Assembly: GCA_026936335.1 (NCBI GenBank)
Contig: JAPMXV010000025.1
Location: 245,400 to 309,399 of the forward strand
Source: Mantamonas sphyraenae STR306
Taxonomy: Eukaryota; Protista; CRuMs
DNA: 64,000 nucleotides
Direction of reading: 5' to 3'
Shown: piece by piece, positions 146 through 7,985 of the stretch
How the letters are laid out: every line of letters begins with the position of its first letter
Position numbering within the stretch: the first letter of the stretch is position 1
Program-made: the position numbers and the translations under genes
Notes under the pieces: model-generated
What the model saw: the letters and a program-made list of their open reading frames with translations, nothing else
The model's database searches: none
What the model was told of the DNA's origin: nothing

Positions 146-268
146 GGCGGCGGGTGCAGGCCTTTGCGACCGACCGTGAACACTGCTGTGCTTTGTTGAA
201 AAACAATAAAAATCCATCCTTTCGATGGTAGTCGGTCGCAAATCCCTGCCGTCACCCGCCCGTCGCCC
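146..268 (-). ncRNA. Candidate Fanzor omegaRNA scaffold (multi-stem structured RNA)
   Basis: Perfect 12-bp inverted repeat 163-174/231-242, extended by 156-160/245-249 and 149-156/253-260. It encloses three small hairpins and lies just downstream of the Fanzor stop codon on the same strand. Confidence 0.55.
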
Positions 269-3200
269 CGCCCGCCTTTATTCTGTGTTGTTTTGTGCGA
301 TTGTTCGATTCACTCTTACTTCTTGCGCAGTTGCGCCCGTTGCTTGCGCCACCTCCTCGATGACAGCTTTGTGTGAGTCTTCCTGTCCACGCCCGAGATG
401 GCCAGCACCAACAGGGTGGCGATGGTCACCGCAGCGTCCGTATCCTTGTGCTGCGCCCATCGTTCGCAGCGTGCGCAGTCCCACCATCTTCGGCTACAGC
501 CCCGCCTCGTGTACGATTTCGGGCTCAGGGTCACCTGGTGTCCACACTCGCGGCACAGAGCAGAGGTGTACGCCTCGCGTGTGACCACGAGCGTATGTGT
601 ACGACTCAGGTGTCTCTTGACGTCCGCCAGAGGGACCCGCGCACTGAAGCCGCCGTTCCCAAAAGCAAGCAGGGAGCGCTGCTGGACCAGCCTGTCAATG
701 TCCGAGATGGAGGCCGAGATGCCAGCAAGGTACCTGTTGCGGAGCTTGCGGTGTTCGTGATGATGCGCATCCACGAGGTTCCGGTGCGGCTTTTGCTGTG
801 CAAACTCTTCCCGCTTTGCTTGGTTCAGTTCTTGCCATGTCGGGGTAGAAGAAGCAGATGATGATGGTGATGATGATGAGGAGGAGGAGGATGATCGTGC
901 GTTGGATCGTAGCGTACGTCGGGAGGACGCCGCTGCTGCTGCTGCTCCTTTGCATCTTCTGACTGCTTCCGTGGCAGCCTGGGTCAGGACGTTCTGCTTC
1001 TTCCTGAGCTGACTGGTCCGCAGCATATGTCTGTAAGATGGTGTTGGCAATGGAAAGTAGATACCTGCGTCCACGTGCAGAACATTGTCGCGATCGAGTG
1101 TCGCTGACATCTTGTTGTGGTGAAAGACAGCGACGCAGCTGGTGCAGTCAACGTTGGGGTCCATCCCGATTACAGGTATACCAGCAGGCGTCCACAAATC
1201 GTTCTGCCCTAGTGTACGGGCCACTTGTTTGTCGGACTCGAGCAAGATTCCAGTGCGCTTGCCAGCAGAAGTTTGCGATGGCTTGCACTCCGCATCTAGG
1301 TGTTGCATGGCGGCTGTAAGGCTGCTCTCGTCGACACCAGACTCTTCAAACCACTGCTCCAGCTTGGGCATGGCCGCTGTGCCGTACGCTTGATAAAAGA
1401 GGCTCGCAAAATGCGAGACGTGGAACCACGATAGATCCCGCACTTTACCCTTCGCGTCGAACCCAACACGGACACATGCGACACGCAGTGCCTCGTCGAC
1501 GTCTGATGCTGCCACGCAGCCCTGAGCACCATTCAGCTTGCGACGGGCTCCAACCGCCAGGCTATGAGGGGCGTAGACAGTTTGATAGATCGATCGGCCG
1601 TCGTTGCCACCGAGGGTGATCCCCTGCCCTCGAGTCTCCTGCCCTGTGTCTGAGTTCCAGAGCCCCGGTAGAACGAGCATGGTGACTGCGTTTACAAGGT
1701 CACCCCGGTGGGCTGCCCATCCAGCTTCCGTTCTCATAATGCCGACATGTGTTCGCCCTTTGATCCTCTCCAGTGCACGCTGTGAACCTGGGCACAGAAC
1801 AGCAGCGTGGTCCACAATAAGCTGGTTGAGCTGGCGAGCGAGCACGTGCGACTTTGCTCGCTCATCCCAGGGCAACGTCTCGATGATCGCGGTGGCAGCA
1901 GCAGCTGCTGCTGCTGCTGCTTCGCCTCCCCTCGTACTCAAGTGCTTCAGAAAGTTGTACGCGACCCGAAACAGCTTAAACTTTAGATCGTACCCCGATA
2001 CCGAAACCGTACAGCGTGCAGTCGCGTGTGGGCGAGGTACAAGCTGGACAGCGTGGCCACATTGCTCAGCCTCCAATTTGAGCAGACAGATGTAGGACGC
2101 GACACGGGCCAGGTTCTTCTCGTCCTCCTTTGCCTTTGAGAGCAAAGGCGAGCCAGCCACGACCTTGCTCACCTTGTCCTTCAGCGGCTGCAGTTGCGTC
2201 CTCCAGTCCATCTGCTGCTGCTGCGCAACCACATGCGCCTCTTCATCTTCATGGTCCTGGTCTTGGTCCTCATCTCGATCGTGCTCGTTATCCTGGTCCG
2301 CTTCCGGTTCTCCATCGTCGTCCACCTCCTCGACCTCCTCTGCTTTCACCCTCTTCTTCCATGCAGCGAGTGACATCCCCGACACGTATGCGCATGCCAC
2401 CTCCGTCAGCTTCCGCGGGAGCTCCGGCACAGCATCGCATACCATTCTCTTCACCGATGACGTCCAGTGTCTGGTCGCAAGGTTCCACATGGTCCTCATC
2501 TGACGTGCAGCTGACCCCTCAGCCAGCAGATTCTCGAGTTGCTGACGCTGCTTCTCAAGCTCCAGGCCGTTGTAGTATGTACTCGCAATATGGGCGCACA
2601 ACACTCCGTACAAGAGCTCCCGTTCCTGCACGAAGCGACTGTGAGTGTCGACCAGGACTGCATCCAATTCGTGGCGTTGGCTCTCAGTCATCCTGCTGTC
2701 CGCTGCGTCCTGAATACTCCCACGTGCCACGGTTGTGGATTTTCCCGCCAGTCCCATCACTCGTTCCACGCCTCCCTGTCCACGGCCGTCATGCATGCCG
2801 TACACGCCAGACAACGCCTGTTCCTCGGTCGGGCGGCTGTCGTTTAGCAGTGCTGCAACCTTCCGTCCAAGCTTGTAGAACGATTCACGCTCTGCTGTGC
2901 GCGCCTCGTCAATCTCATCCTCATCGTCCTCTTTGCTTGACTCCTGTACGTAGCAGACATCCTTGCCACAGAGCAGTTTGGCCAAACGGCCCTTCAAGTA
3001 GGTGCCCTTGGCCAACATCGAGTCACACAGTGTCTCCACCTCGTCGCTGTTGCTGCATGAATCAAGTCTTCCCGCCTCGACATCCGCGAGCAGCTCCTCT
3101 CTCTTCTGTTCCACTGCCTGCTCGAACTGCTGCATGTTGTCGTACCTTTTTGCCTTCTTCTTTGCCTTTTCAATCTCCTCCTGCAGCTCAGTCTGCCGTT

Positions 3201-6200
3201 CAATCGCGTTGTCGAGCGAGGCACGCTCCTGCGTCCCCAGCCGTATCCGTCCTTGAGCTGCAAACGCATCCACGATGTCCGACATCCTACCATCGTCGCT
3301 GTCGACACGAATGGTGTATGTCCTGGCGTTCACCACACCGTCCCTGAGCGCCATTGATGGGCCCGGGGCAGCTGCAGGTTCCGTTTGGTTTGGTTTGTGC
3401 TCCGGCACCCGCGTGTTCCTCGCCAGCTCCATCAACTTGTCCACGGACGACGCCAAAGAGTAATCCGCACACAGTTGGCGCATGACATACTTGAGCTGCA
3501 TACTGGTCCTTGTTCTCATGGCCGGGCGAACGGATGCCAACGCGAGACGCAGACACGAATCGTCGCTCATTGCCGGACGCAGCTCGCCGGCGCTGTCGGC
3601 GCTGTCGGCGCTGGAGGTGGCATATGTGTCCTCACGTGTGCTGGGCATTGCATGTGCCTCTTGCATGTCCTCCGTCTGCATCTCATCCGACTCCACTTCG
3701 TTTTCCAAGTCCTCTTGCTCCGCCCCGGCTCTTCCGTCGGCCTCCCAGGCCTTTACAAACGCCTCTTCTTCATCCTGGACATCCTGGACACCATTCTCAA
3801 GGTCCTCTGTCTCCATACCCGACTCCACTGCGTCGTCAGCGACGTGGTCCACCTCCCCGGTTTGATCTTCGTCTTCTGCGCTGGCGTCGGCCTTCCAGAC
3901 CCTGTATGCCTTGGCGAACGCATCCTCGTCCATGGTGACGTCGTTTCCCCGTTCGTCATCGATTTGTACCCCCAGCGTCTCGGCCAGCAAGGTCACCTGT
4001 TCCACCATGCCGCTCCTCGCATCCTCGATTTCGACATCCGACGCGCGTCCACGAGCAGGTGCTGTCGGCTCAAGTGTGGACGCCTGCACGTTGGAATGAA
4101 TGATTTGGTCCACAGCGTTCTGTACACACCACTTCTGTTGTTCTTCGGCAACGCGCTGTACACTGTCGCAGATGCGTTCGCGGTGGAAGTGGAGAAGGCC
4201 AACGGGAGCACGCTGTACAATGGCGCCCGCACAGGTTCCACCCAAAAGCGCATACGTGAAGAAGCGTGCGTTTGTGCTGTCGTTGCCCACGTGCACAGCT
4301 CTCAGATCTGTGTTGCCAGCAAGGTACTCGTTCCAGTTGTCCTGCCGGCACCAGCCGCACCGGACGCCTCTCGCCATGAGTGCACAAGCGTCTGCACCCA
4401 CCACGAGTGCATCTGCGGCGTGCTGAATGGCGCACAGGTTTGCATCGTCTGTTGCCCACACGCAGAGGCGCTGGTCCACCCAAACGTTCCCGTCGTCGCT
4501 GATTGAAACGCGGTCGTTGTCCGCACTCCTCAGGGTCTCGTACAGCCCACGCAGCCGGTGCTTTTTGGTGTACGTGTGTACGTGCGCGTCCAGCTCCTGC
4601 CGGAATGATGCAGGGATCGCTTGGATGGCCGCCATCACCAAATCCATCCCCGCCTCCTCGACGCTGCCTTCCTTGGCGCTGCCATCCTCCACGCCGCCGA
4701 GTATGAAGTGGTCGAACCCAGCAACTTCGATGTCGTCGGCAAAGCGCTGGACAAGCGGACGCACGGACCGGACAAGTTTAGCCAACGTTGCCGTTTGTGC
4801 AAACGCGGCTGAGACAAAGCTCCACGTCCTCACCGGACGGCCCTCAGGTGGTGTGGTACATTCCAGTGGGACGTACGTGGTCATACCCTCGGGTGACATG
4901 CGAGCGAGCGCCTCTACGATGTCATCGCCACTGGAGTTCACGTCCAGCTGCCGATCGAGAGCATCGCCGCCGTTGGTCAGCACAACGGCGTTGTAGTCCC
5001 CCAATGTTGCTGGTTTCGGTGCAGGAAGAGGCACGCGAGCACCAGCTTGACCGTAAGGCTTGGCACGCTTCGCCGTTGATGCTTCGCTGGCGACAGAGGC
5101 GTTGGCGTGTCCCGGCTTGATGTGAAACGAAGGACAGGAATCGCTTGTTCGGCCTATCATACGAGCGCTGTATGTTCGGCCAAAGTGCTTCCCCACGTAC
5201 CTCGCCACCTCTTTGGCAGAGAGCCTCGCCGCAGCAAGTGTGCACTCACACACGTCGCCCTTGCGAGCTACTTCAATGCACAGCGCATACTCAGACATTG
5301 CGTAGACGCGGCCATTGTGAATGAGAGATGCCTTCAGCAAGTGGCTGATGCTGAGCCAGCACAGGTCATCGTTTCGCAGCGAGCGTGAGCGGCGTGTTTG
5401 CTTGAGAAAAGGCCAGACCTGGGTTGTGAACCGCTTGCGTGCTTCCTTGGCGCGTCTCAGCAACGTGGGGCTGGCTTGGCATTTTGTGGTACTGATGTGA
5501 TGCAGAAACTCCGTCTGCTCGGGGTACTGCACCCTCGCCTGCGCCCACCGTTTGGGCTGCTTTTTCTGCTTTGGCGTGCTTTCGCCAGTTTTGAGCGCCG
5601 TGTACATCTGCCGTGCTTGATCTGTTCGAATGTCGTCGAGAAAGGTCGTGCGTACAAAGCGGTGTTTGCTTTGCCTGGTGGGCCTTCTAGGTTTGACGGT
5701 GTGCCACGAGGAGAAAACCCATTCTGACTCCGGTTCGACCTCGATATCGGTATCCATGGGGTCTTTCGTGACCGTGTCTTTGCCTTTGCTGTCTGCCTCA
5801 GTTTGCTGACGAGTGTGTGTGTGTGTGTGTGTCGTGAGGGGTCCCACACGTGTGTGAGCCGCAGCAAACGGAATTGTGAGGCGGAATTCAAACGTACTCG
5901 CTCACTGCCACTGCTGCTCGAGGAGGAGGAGGCTGAAGACGTTGAACGAGATGCACGGCCTCGACGGCCTCGGGATGCGCTGCGGGATGCACGGGATGCG
6001 CGACCTCCCCTGGAATGTGTCTCTTGGTTCTGTACACGTTGCCGTTTCTGCTGTCGCCACTCCAACGTTTGCCTGCTCCTTCGTTCACGTCTATTTTCCC
6101 GAGCCTCAACGCTACGCGGTGAATGAGATACCTCATCCCGTGTGTCTTCATCGTCTCGACCCCTCTTGCCGCCCTCATCACACAGCAGCAATAGAACCAA

Positions 6201-6506
6201 CATGAAGAAGAACCAACGGAAGCGCATGTTGTTTTGGCGACCACGGCGCATAGTCGAGCAGTCACTCGTACATTCTCATTCCAACGTGTAGGGTGGCGTT
6301 GACAACATTCATTTCAGTGTCCCAGGGTCCTCGCGGCTCTTGCGAGGAATCGTTCTGCAAACACAGCGAGCTTGTTCAACATGGTGCACTTACGCATGAT
6401 CGAACCGTAAGAACCCGCAGAAGAGCGAAATCATGTCTTGGTGAACATTCTATGTGTTTCTGGGCGTTGTTCTCAAGGGTGGAGCCACGTTCACGCTCAA
6501 TTGCAA
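158..6506 (-). mobile_element. Putative Fanzor-carrying DNA transposon (~6.35 kb)
   Basis: 11-bp direct repeat GCGGCGGGTGC at 147-157 and 6507-6517; imperfect terminal inverted repeat (164-187 vs revcomp of 6483-6506, 17/24 identical); encodes a TnpB/Fanzor protein. Confidence 0.5.
316..6251 (-). CDS. Giant Fanzor (eukaryotic TnpB-like RNA-guided RuvC nuclease), ~1,830-1,950 aa, spliced
   Basis: C-terminal motifs: RuvC-I VIGMDPN (D codon 1159-1161), LAFGNG, VVTREAYTSALCRECG (E codon 574-576 plus CxxC), CARC, HKDTDAAVTI (D codon 442-444). Phase-0 intron 5897-5806 (GTACGT...CAG) joins the Arg-rich upstream frame. Start codon uncertain. Confidence 0.85.
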
Positions 6507-6526
6507 GCGGCGGGTGCGCCACATGG

Positions 6527-7985
6527 ATGCACATGTGGCGGCTGGAGTGTCCTCAGTGTCAGCAGACGGTGGACGAGCCTCTGCGTGAGGTGCACGTGCA
6601 CGTGGAGAACGTCCTGTTTGGCTTTGTGCTGCAATGGTAGGGGAGACACTCAGAGACACTCAGCATGGGCGGCTGGAGCGCAGGGACAACACTGACCCCG
6701 ACCGATGGCCACGCGTGTGTGTGTGCCCCGGGACACATCGCAGCGCAAAGTGCAATTGTGTAGTTGCACCGTGTGTGACGTGTGTGCAGCTGGTGGCGCC
6801 GAATGTGCGTGTGGTGGGCGGAGCACAAGCGAGCGAACGCAGCCGCTTGGTGGTTGGGGAGGAATCTGCAAGCGAGGGGATGCAATGCCACACTTGCCGC
6901 CAGCAGTGTGCCCTCTCTGCGCTGGAGAGGGCACAGGTGGCGTGGCTGCCGGTGTCGTTTGCCGTGGTGGTAGGTGTCGTGCGGGTGCGGTTGGGTGTGT
7001 TTCCCGGGAACTGACACGGTGCCCTACACAGCGGCTGGTGCAGCGTTTTGTGCTGGGCAAGCAGTATCAGGAGTACAAAGAGGAGGAGTACGAGACGTGG
7101 GTGCAGCAACTGGTGATGCAGCAGGGTCTGATCAAGTGGCAGGGAGAGGAAAGCGGCATGGGGGAGATGACACCCGAAGGCGCGCGCAAAAGGACGCGTT
7201 TTGCCATGGAGCAGGGCAGCGAGTCACAGGTAGGGTTGACCAGGGAAGGTTCGGGCAGTGCAGGCACACGCACTCCGCAGACAACAACCGTGCTTGGCGA
7301 CGAGGTGTCGCCGAGCAGGCCAACGCCGATCATCACACAAGTGCCCAAGCGCAGGCGAGTTGTGGTGGTGGCACGGCAGACGGCGCTGCAGAAGGGTGGG
7401 GAAGAAGAGGATGATGACGACGAGGACGATGAAGAGGAGGAGCGGGATGAGAACGACGAGGAGGAGGAAGAGGAGGATGACGAGGATGAAGAAGAGGAGA
7501 ACGACGACGATGAAGACGATGACCAGGAAGACGAAGCAAGGGGCCACGAAAGCAGCAGCAACAGCCAAACAGTGCTCACTGTGGACGAACAGAGCAGTGC
7601 GCGTGAGCAAGGCACGCCACAAGTGCTTGCGGAAGAACTTGCACGCATCGAGGGGCATGTGATGCGGTTGAGGCCATTGCTGGTGTCGCTGCGCAACACA
7701 CACAAGCAGATTCTGGACGCAAGAGTCATCTCCTTTCTGCAATTGGGCGGTGGCAGGCGTGTGGCAGCTGTGGGCCAACAGATGAGTGAATCGCTGAGGT
7801 GGAGAGTGTCCCAAGCGTACCCTGGATTGCGCCTGTTTGCAGCTGCATCGTCCAGCAGGTCGGAGGAGGAGGACGAATCGTACACACAGCGCAACACGTC
7901 GCCTGCCCAGCTGCGTGCCCTCCTTGTGCGTCTAGGCGCTGTGCAGAGTCTGCAAGAGGCCGGCGTGCTGTTGTCCACCGTCTGA
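6527..7985 (+). CDS. Hypothetical protein with CxxC zinc-binding motifs and long acidic tract; 3 exons
   Basis: Exons 6527-6636, 6744-6936, 7032-7985 join in frame via GT..CTGAC..CAG introns; CPQC, CAKC, CVTC, CHTC motifs; D/E run. Confidence 0.65.

Follow-up and report, generated by a model that had tools for sequence, protein, structure and literature searches.

The 64,000-nt stretch of Mantamonas sphyraenae DNA analyzed here (the window, on contig 25; all positions below are those of this stretch) contains on its minus strand a mobile element of 6,349 bp (158..6506), which carries a single gene and no transposase gene. This gene encodes a giant protein, the C-terminal ~280 amino acids (aa) of which are a RuvC nuclease domain of the TnpB/Fanzor family. 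Fanzors are eukaryotic RNA-guided nucleases under development as genome editors. The boundaries of the element are the positions where similarity to five paralogous loci (95.8–97.6% at the nucleotide level) starts and stops, and both ends are flanked by an 11-bp target-site duplication, GCGGCGGGTGC on the plus strand (right copy 147..157; left copy 6507..6517). This 11-mer occurs exactly twice in the 64-kb window, each time directly outside an element end. Further copies were sought in the whole M. sphyraenae assembly (25,061,354 bp in 78 contigs); the published FALCON assembly of this genome has a G+C content of ~59% (PMC10492846).

Gene structure

The minus-strand frame at 316–5847 is uninterrupted for 1,843 codons, from a GTG at 5847 to a TAA at 316–318. 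Residue numbers below are counted from this GTG, which is the start given in the open reading frame (ORF) track. All the motifs quoted in a preliminary description of this DNA could be located within the frame: VIGMDPN (residue 1559), LAFGNG (1727), TREAYTS (1756), CRECG (1765), CARC (1791) and HKDTDAAV (1800), the last followed by a basic tail, SSRRWRKQRAQLRKK, at the C-terminal end. The same description had placed the GTG inside a phase-0 GTACGT..CAG intron, which agrees with the sequence: a candidate intron of 92 nt (5806..5897, minus strand) begins with GTACGT at 5897–5892, ends with CAG at 5808–5806 and has phase 0 at both junctions. Upstream of it lies a candidate exon 1 of 118 aa (5898..6251, minus strand), starting with an ATG at 6251–6249 and encoding, in order, the Met, a hydrophobic leader, an acidic patch, a basic KRQRV-type stretch and a Ser-rich end.

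Comparison of the copies argues for this model. All four divergent lineages have, ahead of the long frame, an equivalent ATG-initiated ORF of shared design (10–14 hydrophobic residues, acidic patch, (K/R)RQR(V), Ser-rich end), in each case with a GT(A/G)NGT donor-like site 3' of it. In the lineage represented by locus L020, donor and acceptor are again in phase 0, and exon 1 compared between the window copy and L020 gives a ratio of non-synonymous to synonymous substitution (dN/dS) of 0.27, with a dS of 0.66. Two predicted exons encoding 118 + 1,829 = 1,947 aa thus make up the best-supported gene model. The giant size originally proposed, ~1,900 aa, thus holds in this spliced model, and it recurs in seven further intact paralogues and in a transcript of Mantamonas plastica encoding 1,836 aa. 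Translation from the first in-frame Met of exon 2 (M31 of the long frame) was also considered and was rejected, because this residue is Thr in L020 and the conservation of the frame, and with it the coding signal, reaches upstream of M31. The two exons were used separately in searches, and exon 1 alone had no match in Pfam. The hydrophobic stretch of exon 1, MRFRWFFFMLVLLLLC (6160–6251, minus strand), resembles a signal peptide or membrane anchor, a design kept in L018, L019 and L020. Such a leader is odd for a nuclease expected to work in the nucleus, and the M. plastica homologue has none.

The RuvC/TNB nuclease domain

The nuclease domain, identified by its motifs, covers aa 1552–1827 (367..1194, minus strand) and includes a TNB zinc-finger insert. 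When the protein was scanned singly against Pfam, PF07282 (Cas12f1-like TNB) was the only match, at 23–23.6 bits and under the cut-off of 26.3 bits; in the genome-wide scan the window copy reached 27.7 bits, over that cut-off, and PF07282 was matched in all five lineages tested (best E 4.2e-6). A RuvC/TNB profile built from the giant proteins and the normal-size Fanzors of the same genome found the mimivirus Fanzor2 ApmFz2 (9B0L) in the PDB at E 1.8e-12, and ISDra2 TnpB, Cas12f, Cas12m and LaTranC at ~1e-7, with TnpB and Cas12f structures ranging to 1e-5. With a profile of the giants only, 9B0L was again first (5.3e-5), TnpB and Cas12f followed at 3e-3 to 0.2, and 13 of the 18 PDB matches listed belonged to the same superfamily. 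The narrowest queries were uninformative: a profile of the window's own subfamily (A) and the 1,637-aa M. plastica protein had a sole TnpB-like match in the PDB, which was not significant (E 0.52), and a single-sequence search of the PDB had no match. Language-model neighbors of aa 1480–1843 in the ESM Atlas (score 0.96) were eukaryotic and giant-virus clusters of 300–400 aa with PF07282.

Structure prediction gave a similar picture. A first AlphaFold2 (AF2) model, from an 8-sequence alignment, had a predicted local distance difference test (pLDDT) score of 44.5 and was not used. The second, from 19 sequences (five giant subfamilies, the normal-size Fanzors of the genome and the M. plastica homologue), reached 55–79 in the RuvC part, which is predicted to run beta-beta-beta, helix, beta, helix, beta, zinc ribbon, helix. 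The best 50 Foldseek matches to this model were all Cas12, TnpB or Fanzor structures (best E 2.4e-4). The predicted structure is therefore that of an RNase H-like RuvC fold split by a zinc-ribbon (TNB) insert. Modeling followed by Foldseek had been suggested as a check on the TnpB/Fanzor assignment, with absence of a RuvC/TnpB fold counting against it; the fold was predicted, in agreement with Pfam, the PDB profile searches and the language-model neighbors, and the C-terminal ~280 aa are a TnpB/Fanzor RuvC domain.

Only five columns of the 19-sequence alignment are invariant: D1563, E1758, C1768, C1791 and D1802. Three of these are the catalytic residues (codons at 1159–1161, 574–576 and 442–444, minus strand), while C1768 and C1791 belong to the CxxC..CxxC zinc finger (466–555, minus strand). 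The preliminary description had noted a Gly at the canonical RuvC-II position and a Glu moved to an E-x-x-TS motif before the zinc finger, which was borne out: Gly1730 (658–660, minus strand) lies in a conserved AFG(N/D)G block aligned to RuvC-II, a Gly at this motif (AFGNG, IGDG or VG) is kept by giant subfamilies A–E but not by the normal-size Fanzors, and E1758, within (N/R/D)E directly before [TS][TS]-x-x-C, is invariant in 19 of 19 sequences. The same rearrangement, in which the RuvC-II Glu is replaced by Gly or Pro with a compensating conserved Glu downstream, is known from Fanzors and TnpB2 (PMC10530073). The triad was also correctly described as intact, but its last member needs to be reassigned, as the invariant RuvC-III Asp is D1802, in HKD, and not the second Asp of HKDTD.

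The published Fanzor/TnpB signature is D-X(125,275)-[TS][TS]-X-X-[C4 zinc finger]-X(5,50)-RD (Bao & Jurka 2013, PMC3627910). In the window protein D1563 is followed by 197 residues, T1761 S1762 A L, C1765xxC1768...C1791xxC1794, 6 residues, and K1801 D1802. The one departure from the signature is K1801, where an R is expected ahead of the last Asp; RD is found in the other giant subfamilies. Upstream of RuvC-I, in the place where WED and REC modules are expected, is a segment of ~310 aa (aa 1243–1551; 1195..2121, minus strand) that is mostly helical in the AF2 model, at low confidence, with a pLDDT of 60–87 for some helices only.

A family of giant proteins under purifying selection

When all six frames of the genome were searched with the C-terminal 614 aa, nine loci were identified, designated subfamily A. 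Five of these copies, including the window's, share 95–97% protein identity, and three divergent lineages (contigs 45, 8 and 29) have an overall identity of only 43–62%. Frames of 1,780–1,861 codons stay open in all eight unbroken copies. The five loci closest to the window element in DNA (95.8–97.6%) include one with a frameshift, and dS among the intact ones is 0.05–0.09. In the frameshifted copy, L017 (C55:388501-398500), the gene is split into frames of 815, 593 and 582 codons, while both ends and a duplication matching at 9 of 11 positions are retained.

Comparisons between the divergent lineages, in which synonymous sites have reached saturation, give a dN/dS of 0.26–0.30 over the whole alignment; segment by segment it is 0.24–0.43 in the N-terminal region and 0.10–0.16 near the C-terminus. 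The whole 1,843-codon frame is therefore under purifying selection (omega ~0.27). With these values and eight further copies that keep it (seven intact, one frameshifted), the long frame is far beyond chance. The proportion of non-synonymous differences (pN) is lowest in the RuvC-II/TNB/RuvC-III region, at 0.01–0.13, where the synonymous proportion (pS) is 0.4–0.76. Gene conversion was considered as the source of the ~90% protein identity of divergent lineages at the C-terminus and was rejected: pN is low while pS is high there, except in the last ~57 codons, and this identity reflects selection.

Beyond subfamily A, the genome-wide scan with PF07282 gave 39 matches. About 32–35 of them lie in giant frames of 1,483–2,090 aa, which make up at least five subfamilies (A, to which the window copy belongs, and B, C, D and E; B was sampled by its C-terminal 612 aa only). 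The others are four normal-size Fanzor frames of 633–849 aa and three fragments of 166–204 aa, so small and giant Fanzor forms coexist in one genome.

Outside the M. sphyraenae genome, relatives are scarce. Among 1.84 billion representative proteins, phmmer with the C-terminal 614 aa found one true relative, a cluster from M. plastica, and one repeat-protein artefact. The M. plastica homologue is known from Trinity transcripts (EP00003_P002613/2614), with a longest isoform of 1,836 aa (P0003) and another of 1,637 aa (P0002); no record of a contig encoding P0002 was found. Word-indexed searches with the whole protein and region 1540–1843, with the C-terminal alignment, and with P0002 and its region 1250–1637 returned nothing beyond P0002, and pattern scans of metagenome and viral contigs revealed no relatives. 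The M. plastica proteins, the only homologues found outside the M. sphyraenae genome, share the overall length, the acidic tracts and the C-terminal motifs GxDPG, AFG, T(D/R)E..[ST]S..CxxCGH (in detail TDEHxSS-CxxCGH), WWxCxxC and HKD; they differ in that only the last ~350 aa align, at 23–25% identity. In the M. sphyraenae genome paper, repeats made up 12% of the sequence, were mostly unclassified and were masked prior to gene prediction (PMC10492846). This masking probably accounts for the absence of the giant proteins from protein databases, and probably also for their having escaped the published Fanzor surveys that can be searched.

In principle these genes could be a domesticated or decaying host family with an inactive nuclease. 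The protein is indeed very divergent, as its single cluster of homologues attests, and its RuvC-III motif has KD in place of RD. However, the copies have sharp ends and target-site duplications, five loci remain 95.8–97.6% identical with the low dS given above, the catalytic residues do not vary, and the minimum of pN falls exactly on the RuvC-II/TNB/RuvC-III region. A frameshifted copy like that on C55 is also what a transposon family would be expected to produce. We therefore regard host domestication or decay as extremely unlikely.

The N-terminal extension

The N-terminal extension (aa 15–1242; 2122..5805, minus strand) lies within exon 2, contains two acidic tracts and is conserved. Because dN/dS shows purifying selection there (0.24–0.43), this region is coding rather than an accidental open frame, and the ~1,250-aa extension genuinely belongs to the protein and is maintained by selection. 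The claim of more than 1,000 extra N-terminal residues thus stands, with selection acting over their full length. The proposal of a new Fanzor fusion class holds for the giant, conserved architecture; the word fusion is too strong, since no match to a known domain was obtained for the N-terminal ~1,250 aa.

No family was matched by the N-terminal region in Pfam or NCBIfam, with the window protein or with other lineages (five members in the case of Pfam). Residues 1–620 had no neighbor in the ESM Atlas, and a profile of the best-conserved block, aa 300–640, matched no chain in the PDB. Sequence tests did not support one candidate identity, a FEN1/XPG (PIN-like 5' nuclease) domain. The N-terminal region had no XPG match in Pfam at E ≤ 5, XPG_I (PF00867) at E ≤ 10 across the genome hit five host genes only, the aa 300–640 profile matched no FEN-family chain in the PDB, and hhalign of this block with the five host FEN-family proteins gave a probability of 0.2%. 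Only two of the FEN1/XPG acidic positions are conserved.

The extensions also could not be related to one another. Neither phmmer nor hhalign detected homology linking the subfamily-A N-termini with those of C, D and E, and there was no detectable similarity between those of subfamily A and the M. plastica protein. All the same, the extensions of A, C/D/E and M. plastica are all 1,200–1,700 aa long and all have acidic tracts. Either they have diverged past recognition or such extensions have been gained more than once.

Element ends and the source of the transposase

The left end of the element (6409..6506, minus strand) begins with TTGCAATTGAGCGTGAAC, which matches the right end imperfectly in inverted orientation, and the two ends form a short imperfect inverted repeat (TTGC...CGTGAAC). 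The ~100 bp of the left end are conserved at 88–91% in L018 and L019, but this conservation was not found in the L020 lineage; the last ~700 bp of the element are conserved in all three divergent lineages. Across the subfamily-A copies, the 11-bp duplication is perfect in three, has 1–5 mismatches in four and is absent in one. In the four imperfect cases the first 6–10 bases are exact and the differing bases always adjoin the left end, a pattern unlike random decay. Every right-hand copy of the duplication, and all but one of the left-hand copies, begins with TG.

Taken with the near-identical paralogues, these ends and duplications show that the element has been mobile. A search with DDE_3 transposase by tblastn had no match inside the window element, and none of the genome's 19 DDE_3 genes is near any subfamily-A copy. 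Elements of subfamilies C and D, by comparison, are 7.8–8.3 kb long and have an IS630/Tc1-type transposase upstream of the giant gene, with DDE_3 (PF13358; 92.6 bits in C, 90.3 bits in D) and paired-type helix-turn-helix (HTH) domains. Copies of C and D are flanked by duplications of 8–11 bp, and a left-end motif, CAATTGAGCG, is common to D and A. Because the A element carries no transposase gene, and because C and D have DDE_3, similar duplications and, in D, the shared CAATTGAGCG, we favor mobilization in trans: A elements are probably non-autonomous members of one transposon group.

The C and D transposase genes are at L038:8283-9551 (minus strand) and L033:7577-8755 (minus strand), with the genome positions C44:207327-207743 and C11:277768-278184. 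C and D share a transposase cassette of 1,131 bp at 95.7% DNA identity, and the rest of the two elements has no detectable DNA similarity, which points to recent module exchange or conversion. Two subfamily-B loci, C44:11965-18417 and C10:88356-94054, have a DDE_3 match at or just past the 5' end of the giant frame. In one case the match lies ~600 bp upstream and on the other strand; in the second case it is a 192-codon fragment close to where a 1,977-codon frame begins.

A duplication of 8–11 bp is not a typical Tc1/mariner product, since a DDE_3 transposase of the IS630/Tc1 type would be expected to give TA. Subfamily A departs from the Tc1/mariner-IS630 pattern on two counts, having no internal DDE_3 gene and a duplication of 11 bp rather than TA. 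One way to account for this would be an autonomous element, in which a new type of transposase or integrase, located in the N-terminal ~1,250 aa, cuts with the 11-bp stagger, and the Fanzor part is an accessory. The N-terminus is under purifying selection, and the element holds no other gene, yet it has young copies with intact duplications. The same region matched no transposase, integrase or nuclease family in Pfam, NCBIfam, the PDB profile search or the Atlas, however, and a separate DDE_3 gene is present in C and D, whose duplications are similar and whose D members share the CAATTGAGCG motif with A. With the N-termini of A and C/D/E not detectably homologous either, an autonomous element of this kind seems quite improbable.

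A bolder version would make the giant Fanzor a self-sufficient RNA-guided mobility protein, the staggered cut of which takes the insertion, aided by the N-terminal module or by end-joining. This would explain the missing transposase in A, the duplication of 11 bp instead of TA, and the duplications that are exact only for their first 6–10 bases in four copies. If true, it would amount to a eukaryotic single-protein RNA-guided insertion system, but we consider it very improbable.

The right end as a candidate omegaRNA

The right end and 3' untranslated region (UTR) of the gene (158..315, minus strand) are a structured, non-coding candidate for an omegaRNA scaffold. The ~160-nt 3' UTR is almost unchanged in all nine copies, even where the synonymous sites of the coding sequence are saturated. 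Constraint extends into the gene: over the last ~57 codons (319..489, minus strand) mean pS is 0.27–0.28, against 0.39–0.77 in upstream segments (six lineage pairs), which we propose reflects overlap of an RNA or end element with the coding sequence. The RNA-sense strand of the 3' end folds better than 200 of 200 shuffles (z = -4.15), and in the consensus structure a 13-bp closing stem (arms at about 156–174 and 231–249) surrounds three hairpins. The 3' arm of this stem stops five bases before the element end. An inverted repeat was also detected in the right-end segment. At one hairpin pair a compensatory change from U-A to C-G is found in one lineage, and it is single because the 3' end is almost invariant. 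Rfam returned no relevant family for the right end. Within the conserved right end, a hairpin, CCATCGAAAGGATGG, is followed by T-runs, ATTTTTATTGTTTTTC (214–228, minus strand); the T-runs and an AATAAA (about 262–267) bear on the transcript ends and on the polymerase able to make an omegaRNA.

The 3' end, from the last ~170 nt of coding sequence through the ~160-nt UTR, is thus constrained at the nucleotide level and structured. Since omegaRNAs overlap the 3' end of tnpB and Fanzor genes (PMC10530073), the right end would be a candidate omegaRNA with the flank as guide, in the layout of TnpB and Fanzor loci. By analogy with these systems, our preferred interpretation, to which we assign a probability of roughly two in three, is that the window carries one copy of a young multi-copy transposon encoding a two-exon protein of ~1,947 aa with a Fanzor-type RuvC nuclease guided by omegaRNA. 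The element, without a transposase gene of its own, would probably be mobilized in trans. Its 3' end would be transcribed into an omegaRNA with the guide read from the flank just beyond the right end, such that the 11-bp duplication at 147–157 would be the start of the guide. The ribonucleoprotein could then cut matching DNA, for example an empty or excised site, and repair from a template bearing a copy would retain or spread the element. For the N-terminal extension, our best guess is a scaffold that could couple the nuclease to chromatin, to repair or to the trans-acting transposase. RNA guidance and DNA cleavage by the giant Fanzor are, in this scheme, deduced from its relatives.

Several observations weigh against this interpretation. 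In the protein, RuvC-III reads KD rather than RD, the relocated Glu is ~28 residues from the RuvC-II Gly compared with ~45 reported for other Fanzors, and no WED/REC module was recognized upstream of RuvC-I, where the model is of low confidence and had no structural match upstream of model residue ~290. The AF2 model is weak overall (mean pLDDT 53.6), and true Fanzors from the M. sphyraenae genome were part of its alignment and may draw the model toward a Fanzor fold. At the right end, near-invariance leaves one compensatory change in support of an RNA structure, an AATAAA precedes the terminal stem at ~70 nt past the stop codon, and there are T-runs inside the stem. Conservation of the 3' end could equally serve transposase binding, and beside the duplications no conserved motif resembling a target-adjacent motif (TAM) was found apart from the TG start.

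These points bear most directly on the possibility that the protein is a TnpB-derived nuclease that is not RNA-guided, with the N-terminal region providing DNA or chromatin targeting and the right end being a transposase-binding end only. Failure to detect WED/REC, a near-invariant 3' end with almost no covariation, and AATAAA ahead of the terminal stem are all consistent with this, as is the finding that the terminal 12 nt of the conserved right end also belong to the inverted repeat. To our knowledge, however, every characterized active member of the TnpB/Fanzor superfamily is RNA-guided. The compensatory pair change preserves a hairpin, and synonymous sites are constrained over the last ~170 nt of coding sequence, which is the known omegaRNA layout (PMC10530073). 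On balance a nuclease without RNA guidance is unlikely, and an omegaRNA-guided, trans-mobilized element is the interpretation that we prefer.

Relation to known systems

Many features of this element have precedents, as the rearranged active site, introns, nuclear localization signals (NLSs), Tc1/mariner and non-autonomous elements, and single-ORF elements with inverted ends are all known for Fanzors (PMC3627910, PMC10432273, PMC10530073). What differs here is the size, the large selected N-terminal region (~35 loci and a second species), the 11-bp duplication and the CRuMs host. Fanzor1 proteins (SpuFz1, PDB 8GKH; PpFz; GtFz) have a published mean of 620 aa, whereas the protein described here, at about 1,950 aa, is roughly three times longer; it also differs from them in its ~1,250-aa N-terminal extension without a recognizable domain, its unrecognized WED/REC, KD for RD, and a duplication of 11 bp instead of TA, and it has no sequence-level match to any solved Fanzor1. 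Fanzor2 proteins (ApmFz2, mimivirus L79, PDB 9B0L) are ~450–520 aa long, with an N-terminal HTH, and belong to IS607-type elements with a serine recombinase, none of which was seen here. Signs of affiliation to these two groups conflict, in that the best profile match is a Fanzor2, the best structural matches among Fanzors are Fanzor1 and the DDE_3 context is Fanzor1-like. Bacterial and archaeal TnpB (ISDra2; TnpB2 clade, with its rearranged active site) and Cas12f are ~400 aa long, with IS200/IS605 elements that have neither duplications nor inverted ends, and canonical TnpB retains the RuvC-II Glu, unlike the window protein with its Gly. A search of the literature, which was not exhaustive and did not extend to the supplementary tables of the surveys, returned no paper pairing Fanzor or TnpB with Mantamonas and none on giant Fanzors.

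A deep-branching protist of the CRuMs thus has about 35 mostly intact Fanzor-type copies of giant size in at least five subfamilies, and the architecture recurs in another species of Mantamonas. Should the N-terminal module link RNA-guided cutting with repair, chromatin or transposition, this would reveal what Fanzors do for transposons. It could also supply new effector domains.

Other loci

The four normal-size Fanzor frames in the genome match PF07282 with 45–52 bits at C44:209417-209602, C52:436203-436385, C58:24124-24306 and C6:54752-54949 (L021–L024). Within the window itself, an ORF of 426 codons on the plus strand (6705–7985), with a long Asp/Glu tract, adjoins the left end of the element.

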